Shown piece by piece: positions 1 through 44,240 of a DNA stretch of 64,000 nt. The DNA is from Entomortierella parvispora E1425. Lineage: Eukaryota > Fungi > Mortierellomycota. The DNA is taken from NCBI GenBank assembly GCA_020891255.1, contig BQFW01000006.1, positions 248,001-312,000 on the forward strand. The letters run 5' to 3'. The notes beneath the pieces are model-generated. The model had not been told where the DNA came from and made no database searches. It saw nothing but the letters and a program-made list of their open reading frames with translations. The position numbers and the translations under genes are program-made. Position 1 is the first letter of the stretch. Each line of letters opens with the position of its first letter.

Positions 1-699
1 AATTAACATGAAGAATCAAGAAACGGTGCATGGTGGGCGCCAGAATGAATGAGCAGGGGAGGGATGCATTGTAAAAGGATATCCCGCTAGGCACCAAACA
101 GGATGCCCGCATAGGCTACTCTACCTTGAGCCGTCTGCACAGTTGCAACAACGACCCTATGATTGAACTGCTACACAATCACAATTGAGAGTGCACGAAG
201 GTGCAGGACCTTTCTTCAATCATAATTAACATGAAGAATCAAGAAACGGTGGATGTAGAAAAATATGAGGGGTGGAAATGAAATCAAAGTTGACCATTGG
301 TGTGATTACCTTAAACGTAAAGAACAGAGACGCGATTCAGTCTGCATGCGAGGTGACGGAGTGGGCGCACGGCAGCAGTTCAAGCAACGACGGATGAGGA
401 TGGAGGTGACATGCATCGTGCATGCACTCGCGGTCGTTTTTTTCATGTCTCGTGCCACGTGACCCACGTGATGGAAATGAAAGCGCGCTGCGCGACTTGG
501 CAGCGCTTGGATCGCCTTGTGTCATTCCCGCCTTTCACGCCGTCATTGACTTGCCTTCTTGATAATCAGTTCTCATAATCAGGGAACCACCAAATTACAC
601 ACGAAGGACTTAGAAGTCATTTCCCCTCTCTTCTATGGTGGTGTACTAAGCGGCAATTGATTTGTATTTTGATGATGACCGTCTTTTCTAATGAAAAAC

Positions 700-1485
700 T
701 CCTCATATCATCTTTAGACTGTTGATATCCAAACCAACAAACCGGCTTGGCTGAACGTACATGCTACATATTGGCGGTCCTACGTTCTGCTCCGACAGTA
801 AATAGCTGCAGATACCAAATCTCATTGCCGCAGGACGCTTTGGCAAAGCTGCTTTGCATCGTTTTGGTCTTTGCCTTGAGGATGTCCGCCTCGCAGTCCA
901 GGACTTGGTGACATCTAGCGATATCAGAGAGGTGTTTGCATTGTATGGAGAAGCCAAGACCTCGGGGTGCTGGCCATGAAGGGAATGTATCACCGTAACT
1001 CCTTCTGTTATGCATTTTTCGGCAACCCACATCAGTCTCTGCGGAAATGGGGGTTGGAAGTCAAAATCACCAAGGTAAGCGAGGCGCTAATACCCAACTG
1101 AGATTCGTGTTCAAATACCTATTATGGTGACCTGTTATATTCTATTACTACCATTGCTCGTAGCCACTGCAGGACGATCTTGAACGAGTTGATATGGAGA
1201 TCCTCATTCCAAGTTGCGCCCTAGCGCTCTGGAGTGGAAAGTGATCGAACTAGAATACTTGGATCTGGGCGCCGTGAGCTCAAGGGAAGAAAAAGTGGAG
1301 GTTCTGAGGGGAATTTGGGCGAAACGAACGAAAGGAGAGAACGACTGACCATCAAAGAATGGGTCTTACATGGTCCCTGGATGGATAACGGTCTGCTCTC
1401 TCTGCAAAGTTCCTCTTTGCACAAAGAACGATCGAAACTGTTTTGAGGAGTGCCATACGCCTCTCGAGTTTTAGAATAAACCATC
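700..1485 (+). pseudogene. Possible decayed coding fragment of unknown family
   Basis: Short protein-like stretches broken by stops (e.g. GLCLEDVRLAVQDLVTSSDIREVFALYGEAK), ending in an AATAAA-containing motif also found after the NLR genes. Confidence 0.2.
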
Positions 1486-1761
1486 GTGAAAAGATATCGT
1501 CTCTTGGTCTTCTCCCGACCATGTGATCGTAGAGCATGAAAGGAGATAGCGACAAGTGTGTTTCCTACTGAGCTGGATGTGTTATGGGTTGTGTTTTCAG
1601 AGGACGGGCCACTGGGTTCCATCAGTTGAACCACGCGCAAGGAACTGATAAAAAGAGGATAGACTATGGGAAAAGCAGCACTTTGGTCATTCGTACGCCT
1701 TCACTTTCCATTCTTTGGATCCTCCTTTCAAATCATCAACAGCTCCAGCTCCTCCAACCCA

Positions 1762-1765
<4 letters not shown>

Positions 1766-1792
<27 letters not shown>
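1766..1792. repeat. (CA)n microsatellite
   Basis: Run of cacaca read directly from the sequence. Confidence 0.9.
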
Positions 1793-1959
1793 CATTAGTC
1801 TTCATTCTCCTTGTTTACTGCACCGTCATTCACCCTTTCGTGGACAAAGCCTGTATGCTTTTCGTTGCATTTCGCTACCATCTGGACCCCGCCAGAGCTA
1901 GACAAGCAAAAAGTAATGACACCAACTTTCTTCTAAACACAAAAATGCCATAGATTACC

Positions 1960-4900
1960 ATGGGAATCCAGGGCCTTGCAGCTAGGATCAAATCGACCGA
2001 TGGAGTTGAGGAGGACCTTCGAGGATTCACCTGTCATGTGGACTGCGCCTCCATGTTTTTTGGAATAGTTCACAGTCATGGTTTCCACCTGGATGTGGCG
2101 TTCGCAGCCAAAAATGCTCGGCGACAGGTAGCTTCGCCCGATATCCCAACGAGCGCGTCTACACCACCGTCAACAACCATTCCGAAGCGACCAGGAACAG
2201 ATGAGGCCAGTCTGCATCGAAAACGCGCCCGGGTGGATCCTTCAAGCCAAAGCACCCCTTATGGCATTGTAGCAGCGATGCAGGATATGTTGGCAGAACG
2301 ACCATCCCAAATTCGTTTCAATCAAGACGGGTCACTGGAAGCAAACGATGCTGAGGAAAGGAGCGTTGTACGTATATCTGTATATCTACTCTACATTTAA
2401 AGAGAGTCTGATCATTACAACAAGAGTCATGCCTTTTCGATTAGAATACTTACCGTCTCAATCGCGCTGCTTCTTAGGATTATCGATCCTTGGGGAAGAC
2501 AATCGATCGAATCCTTGTGTCCTACTTGAGCAAGGATCATACAACACTTCATTTCGACGGTTCCCGGTCCCTGGAGAAGGAACTTGCTCACAGAAAGCGC
2601 GACCAAACCTTGGAGACGCGAGTCGGCAAGCTAGAGAAAGACTATGACGGGGGCAGGATCAGGAATACTACCCAACTATACAAGAGGGTGAAGGCTTCGT
2701 ACCGAGTTCCCGCGAGCGCAATCAGGGATGTCATCACACAACTTCATGAAAGCGGATGGAAAATATGCCAGTGTACCCACCAGAGTGACACATGCATTGC
2801 AAACCGCGTGACGAATGCCCATTCACCAGATAATGTCAGGATCATTACCAAAGATTCAGACTTTATGGCATACGAGTCGGTGACCACAATCACAATGCCC
2901 GTTGGTCGGCCCTTGACTTGGACCACTTTCAGTAAGCAGGCACTTTTGGACGAACTCGAGCTCCAAACTCCGGCGCATCTCGTACTCGTTTCTGTCTTGA
3001 CGACCAATGACTATACCGCAGGCATGCCACTCTACCAACTGGCATCGAACATGGCCAAGGTTAGACAGCTTGTGACGGGGAGCTCTAACGTTGCCAGCAA
3101 AGATGACCAGGCAAAATGGATTTACCAGCAAATCGAAGAGTATGTCCGTGCCATACATCAGACTGCGGAGGAGTCAAAGGCTGCAGCCATCGCGAGTTGC
3201 GAAAAACGTCTGAGGAGGATCGCCGACCCTTCCTCTGTAAAGGCCCACCAGAAGGATCTTCGACGAATAGTCACTGCCAACAAGCAGCTCAGCGTGTTAG
3301 CCAACAGCTATGACAATGCAGTGAAGGCATTTGTTCATTGTGAGGAGACAGCTCTAAATGCAGCTGGAAACATTCCAACGCTGGACATTCACCGGCGACT
3401 TTTGTCCATAGTCAACAAGGTGGAACTCAAGAAAGCGAAGCGCAGTTGGGACCGTTTTACCCTAGGCCCTGCAAAACCACCACACACGGAGCCGCCATTG
3501 GCACCACCAGCACCAATAGCCGAATCGGACCACAAAGCACCCTCCACAGATGCGGCAGACTCTTCGACCTCCGTCCAGCCTGTCCCTGACCCAAGCCGTG
3601 CACAGAAAAGGGAGCAGAAGCGACAAAGGAAGAAGGCCAAGAGGAAGCAGGAAAGAAGAAAGAAGAAGTGGGAGAAATCAAGGTTCGTATCCTTTTGGGA
3701 ACTAAAAGACAAAGTTGCATCAACTCCAACGTTCTCACATATCGTTCATGTACCTCTTTAGATTTCGATCCCGGACCGACCTGAACGATCGATATCTTCC
3801 CCAAACAGTTGCGCTGGAGACTGCAAGTCCCATAGACGATGTTGAGCTTGCACACTTGACGCCTTCGACTCCCAAAAAACCAAAACCGCGTAAACCAACT
3901 ACCAAGTCCGATCGGCCACCAATTTCCCCAGTGAAAAAGACACGCAAGAAGGAGCTTCCTATTCCCACATCACCGACAGCGGGTCCCAAGGCTCTTAAAA
4001 AATCCTTCAAATCTGCTTTTGCAACCGTTACTCTGACCATGGGTTCTCTGCGAGGATGTCTCCTGCGTGCCACAGATCTCTCCAAAGAAGAGAGCACGCT
4101 GGTAGTCCAGCGTCTGGATGAAGCTGTCTCCGTCACCAGCAGTGCCAAGCATTACGTATTGAAGATGATGGAGATGAGGATTTTGCGGCACTTGATCGAC
4201 AGCACTGGGGACGAGTTTCTGGAAAATGTCCTGGACTCAAAGTCAGACTGGCTAGAAAGATTCGTGCAGAATCTTTTATCGTTTGTCTTGCGAGGCTCCT
4301 CTGACATGAAAGGTGGACGCCGTCCTGTTAAGGACCAATCCAAGGATGCCGTGGTGGAAGCACAAAGTACCTTTGACGAATTCAAGGCGTTCCACCCGGA
4401 GTTCGAGGCATTAAACCCGTCCAACCTCCCCCTGAGCAATGTCATTGCTGAACTGACACCAAAAATCTGTCTAGCAATCAAGCAGCATTATCGCAAATTG
4501 CCGACCACTCTCTGCAACAAGGTACTGAACGAAGTGGTTTTTGAAATTGGATCACTGCATTCTAAAAAAATTGATTCTAATCGAAGAATACCTTTGCGTG
4601 CTGCAGTTGACAAAGTTATCTTTAGACTGCACCGAGCTTATGGGGGTAGTGGATGACGAGAAGACATCAGATGCTGCCATCAACGACGCCATCAACGAAG
4701 CCGAACTGTCTGCAGATGACGAAGACTCAGACGACGACCCAAGGAAAGCATCGCAAAAGATGACGTTTAAGAAGGGTCACTTGAGACTTTGCTGGCGTCA
4801 TTTGCTGCAGATACCGACAGCCGTAAAACAGCCAAAGTTTTGTGTCCAGGCAGGGATGACAGATTCTTTCATTGACCTGAATGAAGAGGCTCTGGTGGCA

Positions 4901-6413
4901 TTACTATGGGGCATAACAGCCGGACGAGTGGGCGACATCTTGATGACCTCCGTCTGCAATCGGCAACGTGCCAATCATCTCCGGAAAAACTCCTACGGAA
5001 ATGTCATTAAACAGTTGTTTGTCGGAGACCGGTCCACCATCAAGGCAGCCAAGAAAAGACAGACACCGTACGGGAAGAAAATAACCTCAATGGACGAGCG
5101 GAGCAACACCTTGCCGGACGTGTACGGCCAACTGGTGCTAGAGCAATACAACAAGAGACGTATTAATCACTACCGGAGACTGCACAACAACTCCCTCACA
5201 GCCCAGCAACCATTGCCCTCCTCCTCGGCACCATCGACAATGGATCCTGAACCACCTCGACTTCCCATGCCGCCCCAGGTTTCCGGACAATACCGATATG
5301 CCCTGAACAACATAATCCGAACAGATGGGCATGAGCTGCAAATCCTTGGGTATGATCTTTTCAAGCCACGGAAATCGACAAGATACAAAGAGTTCATGAG
5401 GAGGATCGAGACCTTGTATCCCGACAAGGACAGTTTGGTTGCTGAATTCGGTCAAGATCTTGAATCAGTTGTTGTTATCGGAATAGATCCAGGAGAGGTG
5501 GTCAGTGGCGCCTTTTGTGTGACCTTGCCGGGAGAAAGGGTTGTCAACCTGACGGTGAAAAGGTCATCGCTTTATCAGCCGACGCTTGCATTCCGAGAAT
5601 GGGCGGAGCATTGCAAACGGGCCCAACCAACAGCAGGATCAAACGACAGCGTAGGACCTTCCTTGTGGGCTTGTACTCAGCGTACTCAGCAGGGTCAGGA
5701 CCAAGACAACCCAACTTTGTTGCCGTCGCTGCACGACCTGCAAAACGCCCTACATCCGCTCAACTACCACGACATTACAGCCATTGAAAACAGACACCGG
5801 CAGTACTTCCAACTTGAACCTTTGATACACGGGTTTTATTCATCAGCAACCTGGAAGAAAGCGGCTCACGACCACAAGAAATCCAAACTCGCAGAAATGG
5901 ACCTTGCGGTCAACGGTGTTTTAAAGTTGGTGGAATTGGCATGCGAGGGAGTTCCTGTTGAAGCAAGGAGGGTTATATTTGTGCTCGGGAATGGCAAATT
6001 TAAAACAGGCATCAACCTGACGTCCGTGCACACCACTTTCCTGAGGCGTCTTTTCGGAAAGGTAAAAACACACACGATCTTGGTAGTGTCCGCGCTCTCT
6101 CTCTTGTGGGCATGCAGATTGATTATATCTTTTCCCTCGCTTATGATAGATACAAACAATGGGATACAAGGCCGTCATTGGCGATGAATACCTATCATCG
6201 ACAATGTGTCCCACGTGCATAGGAAAGAACGTCGCGACACGCCTTGCAAAACCCTCTATGAGGACGTGTGCATGCACGCAGTGTGGTCGATGGATCCACA
6301 GAGACTGCGTGGGAGCGCACAACATTGCGACAATCGGAGAGCGGTATGTCCAGCAGCAAGACCGACCGCGCCAGCTCGCGCGGCCCCCACCTTCTTCCCT
6401 CCAACCTCTATAA
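1960..6413 (+). CDS. FEN1/XPG-like PIN nuclease fused to Fanzor/TnpB-like RuvC + Zn-ribbon nuclease (5 exons, ~1363 aa)
   Basis: Exons 1960-2367, 2478-3682, 3762-4521, 4607-6061, 6150-6413 join through phase-matched GT-AG introns (4092 nt). FEN1-like motifs: MGIQGLA, HVDCASM, LHFDGSRSLEKELAHRKR, HQSDTCIA, TKDSDF, NDY. RuvC motifs: GIDPG, VLGNGKF, GDEYLSS, CPTC..CTQC, HRDCVGAHNI. The intron 1 acceptor is ambiguous (see findings). Confidence 0.85.
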
Positions 6414-6464
6414 TTTGAAGTTATAGTTATTTTTATCTCGTCTGGCTACGGACAAAGAGATAGG
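6398..6464 (+). ncRNA. Candidate Fanzor omegaRNA scaffold / element right end (putative guide from 6465)
   Basis: Overlaps the stop codon. Hairpins ctataa/ttatag and tttatctc-gtctg(gcta)cggac-aaa-gagatagg. A homologous copy at 44175-44240 shares the same 3' boundary. Confidence 0.65.
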
Positions 6465-6650
6465 CGATATCCCCTTGCTCTACCGATGCAACCAGCAAAG
6501 ACATCAAATCGAATTAAAAATCGCACCATTACTTTGGCTGATGCGAATATCTATTTATTTTTCTTCAGTTCAATCCGGTCCGTGGATGTTCTAGCTAGGA
6601 GCAGTTTCAACCGACATCCGTAATGGTGGGGTGATCCCTCTGATCCCTCT

Positions 6651-8517
6651 TTACTTGAGTCCAGTCATGTAGAATCCAAACTGAACCAGTCCCATTATCA
6701 CTGGCTGCCAGACAATCATATATCTAAACGATAAAAAGAAGTACCCTGTGAGTATTACTAGAGAACATAACGTCATTTCAACTCTGCCTCTGTGTTTTCG
6801 CCCTACCTTAATGCGTCCAAGAGGTTCAGATACAACTGTTGAGTAGTGTCCCATGGGTTGGTCTTGAAGGCGCGCAAGTCAACCTTCTCCTTGCAGTAAG
6901 GGCACATGTCCTTCTTGCCGATCAAACACCATCCACGGATACATTCCTCATGAAACTCGTGGCCACAGTTGAGCTTGATGCTTGGCTCGACAGGTGCTCC
7001 ATTGGGTGAAGGTTGAAGAACCACGGGAGCCTGCAAGTGTCCATGGGCATCAATGGTGCTGATGGCGTTCGACACATGGATACCGCAAATAGCACACACA
7101 CCGAGGCGAAGATGTTTCCGTGGGAATCCTTCCTTGGTGTAGTATCCCAAGGTTGACGCCATGGACTCTGTGCAAAACTCTACGAAATCACGACCCAAAA
7201 TTCTACCACATGCAAAAAAAAAAAAAAAAAAAAAAAAAAATTAGAACTATTGTGCCCAATGTGTCCCTTTTCCTGTGATACATTCCAGTGGTCGTTCGTC
7301 ACATACCCAAAGTAGACTCCATAGGACAAGAATGTCAGTCCCCAGGAAACCAATCCGGAAGTGGTGGGATCCTCGTCATTAGGATCGGGAGCACCAAAGC
7401 CCATGAAGGTCAAAAACATCATACCGTAGCCGATGATGCCAGTGACATAGGAGATTTGGTAGATCACCCAGTACCACTTGTAAACGACCCTATTAGCGCC
7501 AAAACAAGAACGATTGTTGATCAGCAATCATGTCCACCCACCGTTCGATACAATCCATAAGAGCTGCAAAGAACGCAGCAGACAATTACTTTGGTGTCAT
7601 ATGGTGGAGGGGCTTCCTGGTTGCTTTGTAGATGATCCACGAGTTGAGGATTGTGAAGATGCCCCAAACGATCGAAAATTGATGCCATCTTCCATGAAGT
7701 GCATAAAGAAATGGGATAAGCCTACAGAGCAAAATAATAAATGAGGATTATGCGGAGTAGGTCAGTCATCGTCCAGATTCCAGTAATGAAGCTATCCAGA
7801 CAAAATGACTCTTACCAAAGACCGATCGTCGTCGTGGCTTGGTATGACCGATAGTGCTGCTTCTTCCACCAAAGGAGGACAAACTGGAAAGCGACCAAGG
7901 CCACAATGATGATCAATGCCATCTTGCTGTGGGTCTCCTCATGTCCTGCATGCTCGTGAAAGTACTCTGCTTGCTTCTCGAGACTAGTTGAAGAGAGTGG
8001 ACAAAAGAAAAGTCGTCAGCAAGTTGTTTTTGAATGGTTCAGCGTCTCCAAGACATATCTCCAATATTCGCCAAGACAAATGGTCGATATGATCTATCAA
8101 GACCGCGCAGGCAAGAGTTGAGCCTGAGCTTCCGAGATGACTCTTTCCTTTGATGGTCATCTCTAATGACTCTCAAGGACACTAGTCAGATGGCTTCCTC
8201 TGATGACCCCTCTCTTTCTAATCGCCGCTCTCCCTCTTGACTCCTATACTTTTTCACACCGCTCCTCTTTGACTCCTCGACAGGAAATGCAGCTTGGATC
8301 TTCTTAATGACTCCCTAAAAGATGCACTCAGATGCCCATTAATGGCTCTTCTACGGAGCACCCTGTGAAGGTCGCATGGATGACTCTTCCTGTTGCTTTG
8401 GTGATAGAGACGCGGGGATTTAGAGACTCACTTGTGGATCGTGTTGTTGGACAAATGGATTTTGCCTTCTTGAGCTTCATGGATGATGTGCTCAATCTTT
8501 TGGGCTTCCTGCTCCAT
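6651..8517 (-). CDS. RNF121/RNF175-like membrane RING-H2 E3 ubiquitin ligase (multi-exon)
   Basis: First exon MEQEAQKIEH (8517-8432), then HEHAGHEETH-TM, YKWYWVIYQISY, CAICG...CGHEFHEECIRGWCLIGKKDMCPYCKEKVDL, last exon WQPVIMGLVQ. Confidence 0.88.
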
Positions 8518-10026
8518 AGTGTGAATAGGAGGGTGGTTGGAGGAAGGATGGAGTGAGCTGGTGCTGGAAGGTCAGTCCAGGTTGTCGGTTGATGGGTCGG
8601 ATGTTCGAAGGATGAGCCACGAGAGAAGGTTCTTTCTCTCCCCACCTTGTTCTCAGTTTTGTGGTCACAGCCACTCCAACTCTCTGAACTGGAATCACTC
8701 TCCTATAATTTCTCCAAATGTTCAAATAAAAGATGTCGGATTGGGCCCACCAGACACAAAGATCAACGTCACACAACTCCGCACTTACAGAGGACTATAA
8801 AAGGGACAGGGAACTTGTCAGTCTTACTTCTTTATCGCACTCCTGTGGTTATAACTATAACGGATAAACATCATGCCTTTTACCTGACGTTTTCGAGTTG
8901 CAGCCACATCAAGGGAGTTGATCCTTATTTTTGGTGCCGCCCCTCCGTGGGCGGACTCTCTTATTTCATTCTTCAAAAAAAAAAAAAGGTGTACAATTTG
9001 TATGTGTTCTTTCTGTTCCTGCGTTTGTTGCCCAGCGCGCTTCAATTCCCTGCTCGATCGCCCTGTCCCTGCTTCAATTGCCCCTGGTACCCTGGAAAAC
9101 AACAATAAATGGTCTAATTTGAGCTCTCATGTTCGGAGCTCTGTTCTCATAGTTTGCTCCTTGAGTGCCTCCCTCGCGGCCAATTTGCTCTTTCTTTCTC
9201 GTCTGTTGTCCGCCAGACTCTGCAGCATTTCGAGCAAGCCAAGCCCACACACCAGCGCACCTACCATTCAATCCCTCCATCCCTTTTCTCTTTCTCCAAA
9301 CTCCACATCATCGTCGTCCTCCTCCTGCCCCACTCCATTCAACATCCGTGTAAGTTGCAGTGTTGCACTGAAACAGAATGCGTCCCGTTCAGGGTCACAC
9401 TGACATGTGTTTGCCACTGCACCCTCAGCCCTCGTTCGTTGTTGGTGCGCATTCCCAATCCTAACAAAGGGTCCAGGCACCGACGGCAGGCATTGGGAAT
9501 CAGAACCGTCAGAGACTGTTCCGCCTGCCTGCCTGCCCGCCTGTCTGCCTGTCTGCATGCCTGCCATCGCCTGGCTTCTGTCTGGTGTCGCGCCCTCTCC
9601 CTTCATTTGATTCTGTCGCGCTCACTATATCCTTGTCTCCTCCCTCTCGCTCTCCTGTTCTCGTTCTGCAGTCTGTTCCAACTGCTCCCTCTTGCCATCC
9701 ATTTCCGCCGTTCCATTGCCCTCTCTCCCTCTCCCTCTCCATTAATCATTAACATCCACCACCTACATCTGCATCAGGCGACCACTCTTCCTTGTTCCGT
9801 ATGGCTCATCGTGCGCAACGAGCCTTGTTTAGCATTCTAAATGATCATGATGTCACTGTTTGGATACTAACATCTCTTTCTCTCCTCATTCACTTCCCCA
9901 TCCTGCTTAAACATCTCTTGACGTCGCGTGCTTTTATCGTCCACAGGTCACCCCATTCTATCCTGCTCCACGCTCAGTTAACGACTTTCCCCTGAGCGAC
10001 CATTTTTGCAAGGACCAGGACTCATC

Positions 10027-44174: not shown

Positions 44175-44240
44175 CCTATCTCTTTGTCCGCCACAGACGA
44201 GATAAAAGTAACTATAAGTTCAAATTGTAGAGGTGGGAGG
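44175..44240 (-). ncRNA. Orphan copy of the candidate omegaRNA scaffold / right end
   Basis: Minus strand reads cctcccacctctacaatttgaacttatagttacttttatctcgtctgtggcggacaaagagatagg. Versus 6398-6464 it has 4 substitutions outside the loop and a changed loop (gcta to tgg). Homology stops after gagatagg. Confidence 0.6.

Follow-up and report, generated by a model that had tools for sequence, protein, structure and literature searches.

Fanzors are eukaryotic RNA-guided nucleases that are under engineering as compact genome editors, and the described ones are single-nuclease proteins. Fz1 proteins mostly have a length of 600-700 amino acids (aa) and share a conserved domain organisation, with PpFz1 and its 100-aa RuvC insertion being a notable exception (PMC11423790). 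The catalytic site of Fanzors is rearranged, such that Gly or Pro takes the place of the RuvC-II glutamate and an alternative conserved glutamate is present (PMC10530073). Designers of genome editors have independently tried fusions with the T5 5'-exonuclease, using Cas12a, IscB, and SpuFz1, and the results were mixed: the engineered fusions raise Cas12a and IscB editing (PMC11471210), and a T5 exonuclease fusion lowered SpuFz1 editing (PMC13434818). Here, we analyzed a stretch of 64,000 nucleotides (nt) of the fungus Entomortierella parvispora E1425 (contig BQFW01000006.1, positions 248,001 to 312,000), which is called the window in the following. The locus at positions 1960-6413 of the window very likely represents one gene that fuses a FEN-type nuclease to a Fanzor. 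Its sequence predicts a protein that consists of a FEN-type nuclease (residues ~1-430), a linker of ~180 residues, and a Fanzor (residues ~610-1363).

The locus has several features in common with the Fanzor1 proteins SpuFz1, GtFz1, and PpFz1. It is eukaryotic and intron-bearing, and it encodes a TnpB-type split RuvC together with a TNB zinc ribbon. Judged by motif, it may also share with Fanzor1 the glycine at the canonical RuvC-II position and the alternative glutamate of a DE motif. Like Fanzor1, it has a basic region resembling a nuclear localization signal (NLS), as well as a conserved segment at the 3'-end of which a gene-less second copy exists. In the model of a homologue, the C-terminal half matches Fanzor1 structures best. 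In contrast to Fanzor1, the protein has a length of 1363 aa and carries an extra, complete nuclease of the FEN/XPG family (~430 residues) and a long linker.

The arrangement also resembles the engineered T5 exonuclease fusions, in which a single polypeptide combines a 5' nuclease of the FEN superfamily with an RNA-guided RuvC or HNH nuclease, and T5 exonuclease itself turned up as a fold match of the N-terminal domain. In contrast to these laboratory constructs, the fusion described here is natural and conserved over deep divergence, its nuclease domain is of the eukaryotic XPG/FEN1-like type, and its linker is long. The initial annotation of this locus had remarked that its author did not know of a described PIN-Fanzor fusion, and the literature searched contained no Fanzor with a PIN, XPG, or FEN domain, the supplement of PMC10530073 on extra Fanzor domains being outside its scope, and no Fanzor paper that mentions Mortierella. 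In our reading, the FEN-Fanzor fusion is new, as a variant of the known Fanzors, and is a natural counterpart of the engineered T5 exonuclease fusions.

For the gene model, frame-keeping GT..AG introns were sought between the plus-strand pieces of open reading frame (ORF) at 1960-6413. There are five such pieces, in frames 1, 0, 1, 2, and 0, and each of the four junctions has one GT-AG intron candidate with a good fungal consensus. The spliced coding sequence comprises 4092 nt and contains only one stop codon, the terminal one. The initial annotation had joined five ORF pieces via four phase-matched introns to approximately 1363 aa, and the spliced length turned out to be exactly 1363 aa. The gene is present in one copy in the window and has the following exons and introns:

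1960..2367, plus strand: exon 1, residues 1-136, start of the FEN/XPG-like domain (ORF and splice analysis)
2368..2477, plus strand: intron 1, 110 nt, GTACGT..CTTCTTAG, phase 0
2478..3682, plus strand: exon 2, residues 137-537 and two bases of the next codon, FEN/XPG catalytic core
3683..3761, plus strand: intron 2, 79 nt, GTTCGT..CTCTTTAG, phase 2, at the joint of the nuclease and Fanzor modules
3762..4521, plus strand: exon 3, residues 538-791, Lys/Pro-rich linker followed by the helical N-terminal portion of the Fanzor module
4522..4606, plus strand: intron 3, 85 nt, GTACTG..TGCTGCAG, phase 0
4607..6061, plus strand: exon 4, residues 792-1276, acidic stretch, REC/WED parts, RuvC-I, and canonical RuvC-II position
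6062..6149, plus strand: intron 4, 88 nt, GTAAAA..TATGATAG, phase 0
6150..6413, plus strand: exon 5, residues 1277-1363 and stop codon, GDEY, C4 zinc ribbon (TNB), and RuvC-III

In exon 1, the aspartate of the HVD motif (2041-2043) is followed by a stretch of low complexity that includes the basic motif HRKRARV. The donor site of intron 1 is ambiguous, with positions 2365, 2368, and 2380 all being in phase 0, and the choice alters at most a few residues of the low-complexity stretch. In exon 2, the catalytic core is followed by a helical extension and then by a basic, NLS-like linker segment (residues 513-533). The linker between the modules is disordered, strongly basic, and NLS-like. Exon 3 is collinear with the homologues, as revealed by tblastn and blastp, and its helical part presumably represents REC/WED. 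Intron 3 is missing from two of the homologous loci (L004 and L005), in which residues 543-1278 are encoded in a single ORF. Exon 4 has homologues with E values down to 1e-153, and exon 5 is kept in L001, L003, L004, and L005.

The N-terminal part of the protein is assigned to the Rad2/XPG/FEN1 superfamily of nucleases, and this assignment is supported by a family profile and by a predicted fold. Single pieces of the window protein were not recognized: Pfam yielded no match for exons 1-4, also none to an XPG model, and phmmer searches of single pieces against the PDB returned noise only. An HMMER search with exon 2 in 1.84 billion representatives retrieved 212 relatives, and a profile (A4) contained 116 family members, which on average are ~25% identical to the query. 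The comparison of this profile with solved structures revealed matches to yeast Rad2 (6e-15), human XPG (1.2e-13), FEN1 (4.7e-12), and EXO1 (2.8e-9). When members of A4 were analyzed individually with Pfam, XPG_I was detected in 29 and XPG_I_2 in 14 of the 116 proteins.

The fold of exon 2 was predicted with AlphaFold2 using the A4 alignment, and the model, which excludes the first strand that is encoded in exon 1, had a predicted local distance difference test (pLDDT) value of 90.6 and a predicted template modeling score of 0.79. With Foldseek, the best 50 PDB matches were all FEN-superfamily enzymes, and FEN1, EXO1, Rad2, T5 exonuclease, and XPG were each matched with a probability of 1.00. 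VIA-align yielded Z values of 14.6 for EXO1 and 14.5 for FEN1, over 222-236 residues and with root-mean-square deviations of 2.8-3.5. Among the reviewed entries of the AlphaFold DB, only FEN1 orthologues were found. The protein-language-model neighbours of the nuclease half were poxvirus G5, herpesvirus vhs, and viral or eukaryotic XPG-type clusters. An N-terminal FEN1/XPG domain had already been proposed in the initial annotation, and both the profile and the fold bear this out.

FEN1-like motifs had been claimed for the N-terminus, and the following were located there: MGIQGL (residues 1-6), HVD (26-28), HFDG (161-164), QSD (238-240), DSD (262-264), and NDY (313-315). The motifs MG[IV]xGL and HxD are kept in eight full-length homologues. 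FEN1 positions were mapped via the alignment to the hidden Markov model (HMM), together with the FEN1 numbering. On this basis, we take D28 (HVD, exon 1) to be the equivalent of FEN1 D34, D163 (2556-2558) that of D86, K170 that of K93, R177 that of R100, Q238 (2781-2783) that of E158, D240 that of E160, D262 and D264 (2853-2861) those of D179 and D181, and D314 that of D233. K170 and R177 have the exact +7/+14 spacing from D163. The active site of FEN1 is thus represented in the window protein by six of seven carboxylates and by both the gateway Lys and Arg. Across the 116 members, the equivalents of D86, K93, R100, E160, D179, D181, and D233 are 94-100% conserved, a pattern that reads as the signature of a maintained nuclease active site. 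Residue 238 is dimorphic: 50 of the 116 members have E and 46 have Q. E-type and Q-type members both keep all other catalytic positions, and both types are found among the fusion proteins.

In comparison with Rad2, XPG, FEN1, and EXO1, the domain shares the MGIQGL start, the helix of the helical gateway, a match in the H2TH region, and the equivalents of D34, D86, K93, R100, E160 (as D), D179, D181, and D233. It differs from these enzymes in that the equivalent of E158 is Q, the identity to solved members is only ~16%, and ~90 low-complexity residues lie between the first aspartate and the remaining core. Furthermore, it has no PCNA-type tail, and instead the domain is followed by the Fanzor.

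The C-terminal module contains the motifs GIDPGE (residues 1083-1088), GDEY (1287-1290), CPTC..CTQC (1296-1321), and HRD (1326-1328). The RuvC-I aspartate D1085 (5486-5488) is nearly invariant among the homologues, and D1328 (6303-6305) of the HRD motif represents RuvC-III. Pfam identified the domain PF07282 (Cas12f1-like_TNB) in exon 5, with an E value of 1.3e-7 and 32.1 bits at a gathering cut-off of 26.3. Bao and Jurka have defined Fanzor/TnpB proteins by the motif D-X(125,275)-[TS]-[TS]-X-X-[C4 zinc finger]-X(5,50)-RD (PMC3627910). The window protein contains this motif, composed of D1085, 205 residues, S1291-S1292, T-M, the zinc finger cysteines C1296/C1299/C1318/C1321, 5 residues, and R1327-D1328. 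The canonical RuvC-II strand has a glycine (VLGNGKF), as judged by the motif, and GDEY (E1289, 6186-6188) precedes the zinc ribbon and is kept, at the motif level, in L001 and L003-L005. The glycine together with the downstream DE fits the rearranged site that was reported for Fanzors (PMC10530073).

The RuvC fold was modeled on a homologue from Mortierella sp. AD031 (P0005), which covers the last exon and shares 44% identity with residues 688-1356. The pLDDT value of the model was 61.9 overall and 70-87 in the RuvC/TNB part. Foldseek yielded SpuFz as the top match (1.1e-6), followed by GtFz, PpFz, Cas12f, and TnpB, and the Z values with VIA-align were 12.9 for PpFz and 12.4 for SpuFz, over ~226 residues. 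Taken together, fold, motif, and TNB domain support the assignment of the C-terminus as a Fanzor1-type RuvC with a TNB zinc ribbon. A RuvC and a zinc ribbon had been proposed at this place in the initial annotation, and the Pfam domain, the Bao-Jurka motif, and the P0005 fold agree with it. It had also been set as a test beforehand that the C-terminus should model as a RuvC, and the model of the homologue does match Fanzor structures. With significant homology and a fitting fold model for each of the two halves, a chance resemblance is not a credible explanation.

Next to the two domains themselves, their linkage was analyzed in relatives. A blastp comparison of the spliced model with all retrieved proteins revealed that 13 public proteins contain both halves. 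They stem from Entomortierella parvispora, Mortierella alpina, Mortierella spp., Gryganskiella cystojenkinii, Linnemannia hyalina, L. gamsii, L. zychae, Benniella, and a metagenome. The fusion architecture is thus present in at least eight species of Mortierellaceae. The initial annotation would have been refuted by homologues that never share the fusion, which is not what is seen. The named relatives all belong to the Mortierellaceae, and none was found elsewhere at the sensitivity of the search. Judged by these sequences, the family appears to be specific to the Mortierellaceae, and the window copy appears to be one intact spliced gene.

In the DNA of L001, L003, L004, L005, and L006, the parts follow one another in collinear order on a single strand. 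They are also collinear in L002 of Lobosporangium transversale, which is ~25% identical and is annotated as two genes. The intron at the joint of the two modules is situated at the same codon and in the same phase in the window, L001, L004, and L005, and its splice sites are canonical in all four. The four introns have lengths of 79-110 nt and are mutually unalignable, and conserved protein sequence flanks the joint on either side (..KW.KS / R / FRSRTD..RY.PQT). The similarities of the N-terminal and C-terminal domains co-vary among seven full-length members, with a Spearman coefficient of 0.85 for 21 non-independent pairs.

In the window and in L001, but not in L004 and L005, an in-frame ATG lies 14 nt ahead of the acceptor of intron 2; in the latter two, no start codon is present near the Fanzor half. 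A Fanzor-only start at this ATG was dropped as a conserved feature, because it is absent in the latter two loci. RNA libraries from soil contain a relative of the Fanzor half: one soil metatranscriptome includes a contig of 449 nt that is ~88% identical to 5190-5638. It lies inside exon 4 and spans no joints, and carry-over of DNA is possible.

Many public models of these genes have wrong ends. They run into the last intron, end at ..QKV, and lose the exon with the zinc ribbon and RuvC-III, while others split the locus into two genes; wrong ends or splits were found for L001, L002, P0001-P0004, P0024, and P0027. A Pfam analysis of eight long homologues yielded almost no matches, because their models are devoid of the last exon. 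The automatic names in UniProt are 'PIN domain-like protein' and 'Cas12f1-like TNB domain-containing protein', and thus the halves have been recognized separately by machines. Surveys of protein databases therefore under-detect the TNB domain and the fusion, as most public models either break off at the last intron or are split. In addition, compact and very divergent versions of the arrangement exist. In L. transversale (L002, 8001-11371), the FEN-like part, RuvC, and zinc ribbon are contained in ~3.4 kb, with HG replacing the DE motif ahead of the zinc ribbon, and a Benniella protein of 643 aa (P0072) is a further compact version of the FEN-like and RuvC/zinc-ribbon arrangement.

The 3'-end of the gene overlaps a segment that occurs a second time in the window:

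6398..6464, plus strand: 3' segment, 67 nt across the stop codon, 88% identical to 44240-44175 (blastn)
44175..44240, minus strand: gene-less second copy of the 67-nt 3' segment

The two copies diverge right after ..GAGATAGG, with unrelated sequence beyond. The segment is a candidate for the 3'-end of an omegaRNA scaffold or for an element end. The abrupt divergence of the two copies is what would be expected of an omegaRNA scaffold end with a variable guide behind it. Gene-less 'ghost' omegaRNA loci are known for SpuFz1 (PMC10432273), and the copy at 44175-44240, which is also gene-less, is comparable in kind. The DNA flanking the FEN-Fanzor gene showed no similarity to the loci of other species.

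Several other explanations of the locus were considered. It might encode two products, a FEN-like nuclease (exons 1-2, stop at 3761) and a separate Fanzor (exons 3-5), both acting for the same element, in which case the joined model would be an artefact of gene prediction. This would fit the annotation of two genes at the equivalent loci of Mortierella sp. AD031 (311 and 618 aa) and Lobosporangium (429 and 455 aa), as well as the in-frame ATG 14 nt ahead of the intron 2 acceptor in the window, and the 449-nt metatranscriptome contig lends no splice-joint support to one mRNA. However, the joint intron keeps its codon, phase, and canonical splice sites in four loci although the intron sequences are unalignable, the protein sequence is conserved across the joint, L004 and L005 lack both the ATG and any other nearby start for the Fanzor half, and thirteen independent public models join both halves. 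Moreover, an intergenic gap of zero length in combination with an own promoter would be unusual for a eukaryote. We regard two products as very unlikely. Two separate mRNAs had been named in the initial annotation as a finding that would refute the fusion, and the splice joint shared by four loci argues against them. The possibility that the gene is a decaying or domesticated relic, i.e. an old transposon gene that happens to be intact or was co-opted by the host for a function unrelated to RNA-guided cutting, is judged equally improbable. Around the gene, neither terminal inverted repeats nor a target-site duplication were detected, a host RING-finger gene is only ~240 nt away, and some relatives have lost motifs, e.g. 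N is found at the D314 position in P0019 and P0160, and the DE motif is absent in Lobosporangium. Against a relic stand the 1363 stop-free codons over five exons with every splice site canonical, the intact RuvC and FEN catalytic positions (all but one), and the gene-less second copy of the 3' segment in the window.

Slightly less improbable, but still unlikely, is an action of the FEN-like module on RNA, either in trimming the 5'-end of an omegaRNA precursor or in transcript degradation. Herpesvirus vhs, a member of the FEN superfamily, degrades transcripts, and the protein-language-model neighbours include vhs and poxvirus G5 clusters. Q at the E158 equivalent in half of the family suggests an altered chemistry. 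RNA nucleases are known in the FEN superfamily (PMC5499597). In contrast, the top profile and fold matches are flap nucleases and exonucleases that act on DNA (Rad2, XPG, FEN1, EXO1), and the gateway residues of the K93/R100 type and the H2TH-region match are kept. In addition, the omegaRNA of TnpB is processed by the RuvC protein itself. Each of the three explanations, two products, a relic, and an action on RNA, is less favoured than a FEN-Fanzor fusion.

How the two modules of the FEN-Fanzor fusion would cooperate can be proposed tentatively, and the following mechanism of cutting and resecting is plausible, though our confidence in it stays below even. The Fanzor half would bind a guide RNA encoded at the 3'-end of the locus, and its RuvC site would cut DNA that matches the guide. 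The tethered FEN-type nuclease would then act on a 5' flap or 5'-end that is exposed by the R-loop and the staggered cut, and it would remove the flap or begin 5'-to-3' resection. As a result, simple re-ligation would be prevented and the break would be channeled into homology-directed repair (HDR), an outcome that would favour copying or retention of a selfish element. In bacterial TnpB, the outcome of cut and repair likewise favours copying or retention of the element. The initial annotation had already suggested that the PIN module could resect or trim the break or the displaced R-loop strand, or could process the omegaRNA, and all of these roles stay hypothetical. A more far-reaching version, in which the fusion would be a self-sufficient RNA-guided homing machine that needs no transposase, is rather unlikely. 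In that case, the Fanzor half would cut empty or allelic sites specified by the guide at the element end, the built-in 5' nuclease would start resection, and the host would copy the element into the break by homologous recombination.

Several observations weigh against a fusion protein that cuts and resects. The single mRNA and the single polypeptide are what we infer from the DNA sequence, and retention of intron 2 would lead to a stop at 3761 and thus to a nuclease-only protein. The equivalent of FEN1 E158 is Q here and in about half of the family, which could weaken or change catalysis. On the Fanzor side, a profile of the C-terminal half (A2) had no match to a Fanzor, TnpB, or Cas12 among the PDB sequences, so that the RuvC assignment is based on fold, motif, and TNB domain instead; the fold, in turn, was derived from the model of a relative with 44% identity, the REC/WED part of which is poor. 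The analysis of the locus yielded no omegaRNA, target-adjacent motif, terminal repeats, or target-site duplication. The predicted RNA fold of 6290-6466 had a z-score of only -1.0 and is not exceptional, the sole Rfam match was a U5 small nuclear RNA (snRNA) outside of the Fanzor gene, and a search around the Fanzor gene yielded no convincing terminal inverted repeats and no target-site duplication. A transposase ORF was also not found within 1-9000. Because the element ends are undefined, the missing repeats and transposase say little about whether the gene resides in a transposon. Lastly, the reduced editing of the T5-SpuFz1 fusion argues that the benefit of a tethered 5' nuclease is not automatic.

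The surroundings of the Fanzor gene contain other genes. A host RING-H2 gene at 6806-7198 and 7183-7527 (minus strand; zf-RING_2, 6.5e-7) is arranged tail-to-tail with the Fanzor gene, at a distance of ~240 nt from its stop codon, and a hydrophobic upstream ORF may belong to it. A gene for the spliceosomal U5 snRNA is located at 8838-8955 (plus strand; RF00020, full-length match, 69.6 bits at a gathering cut-off of 40). Upstream, a (CA)n microsatellite at 1720-1760 (plus strand) lies ~200 nt before the start codon and is visible as a THTHTHTH run in ORF translations.

The FEN-Fanzor fusion is of interest both for the design of editors and for Fanzor biology. Its linker and domain order, both shaped by natural evolution, could teach how to couple cutting with resection or flap removal. 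If the homing version were true, the protein would amount to a eukaryotic counterpart of homing endonucleases that is programmed by RNA and brings along its own resection activity, and it would offer a natural design for HDR-biased editors. The fusion was kept while the family diverged to ~20-25% identity, and this persistence argues that the two activities cooperate in the cell. It opens to testing the long-standing question of how Fanzors serve their elements in eukaryotes, in which the choice of repair depends on 5' resection.

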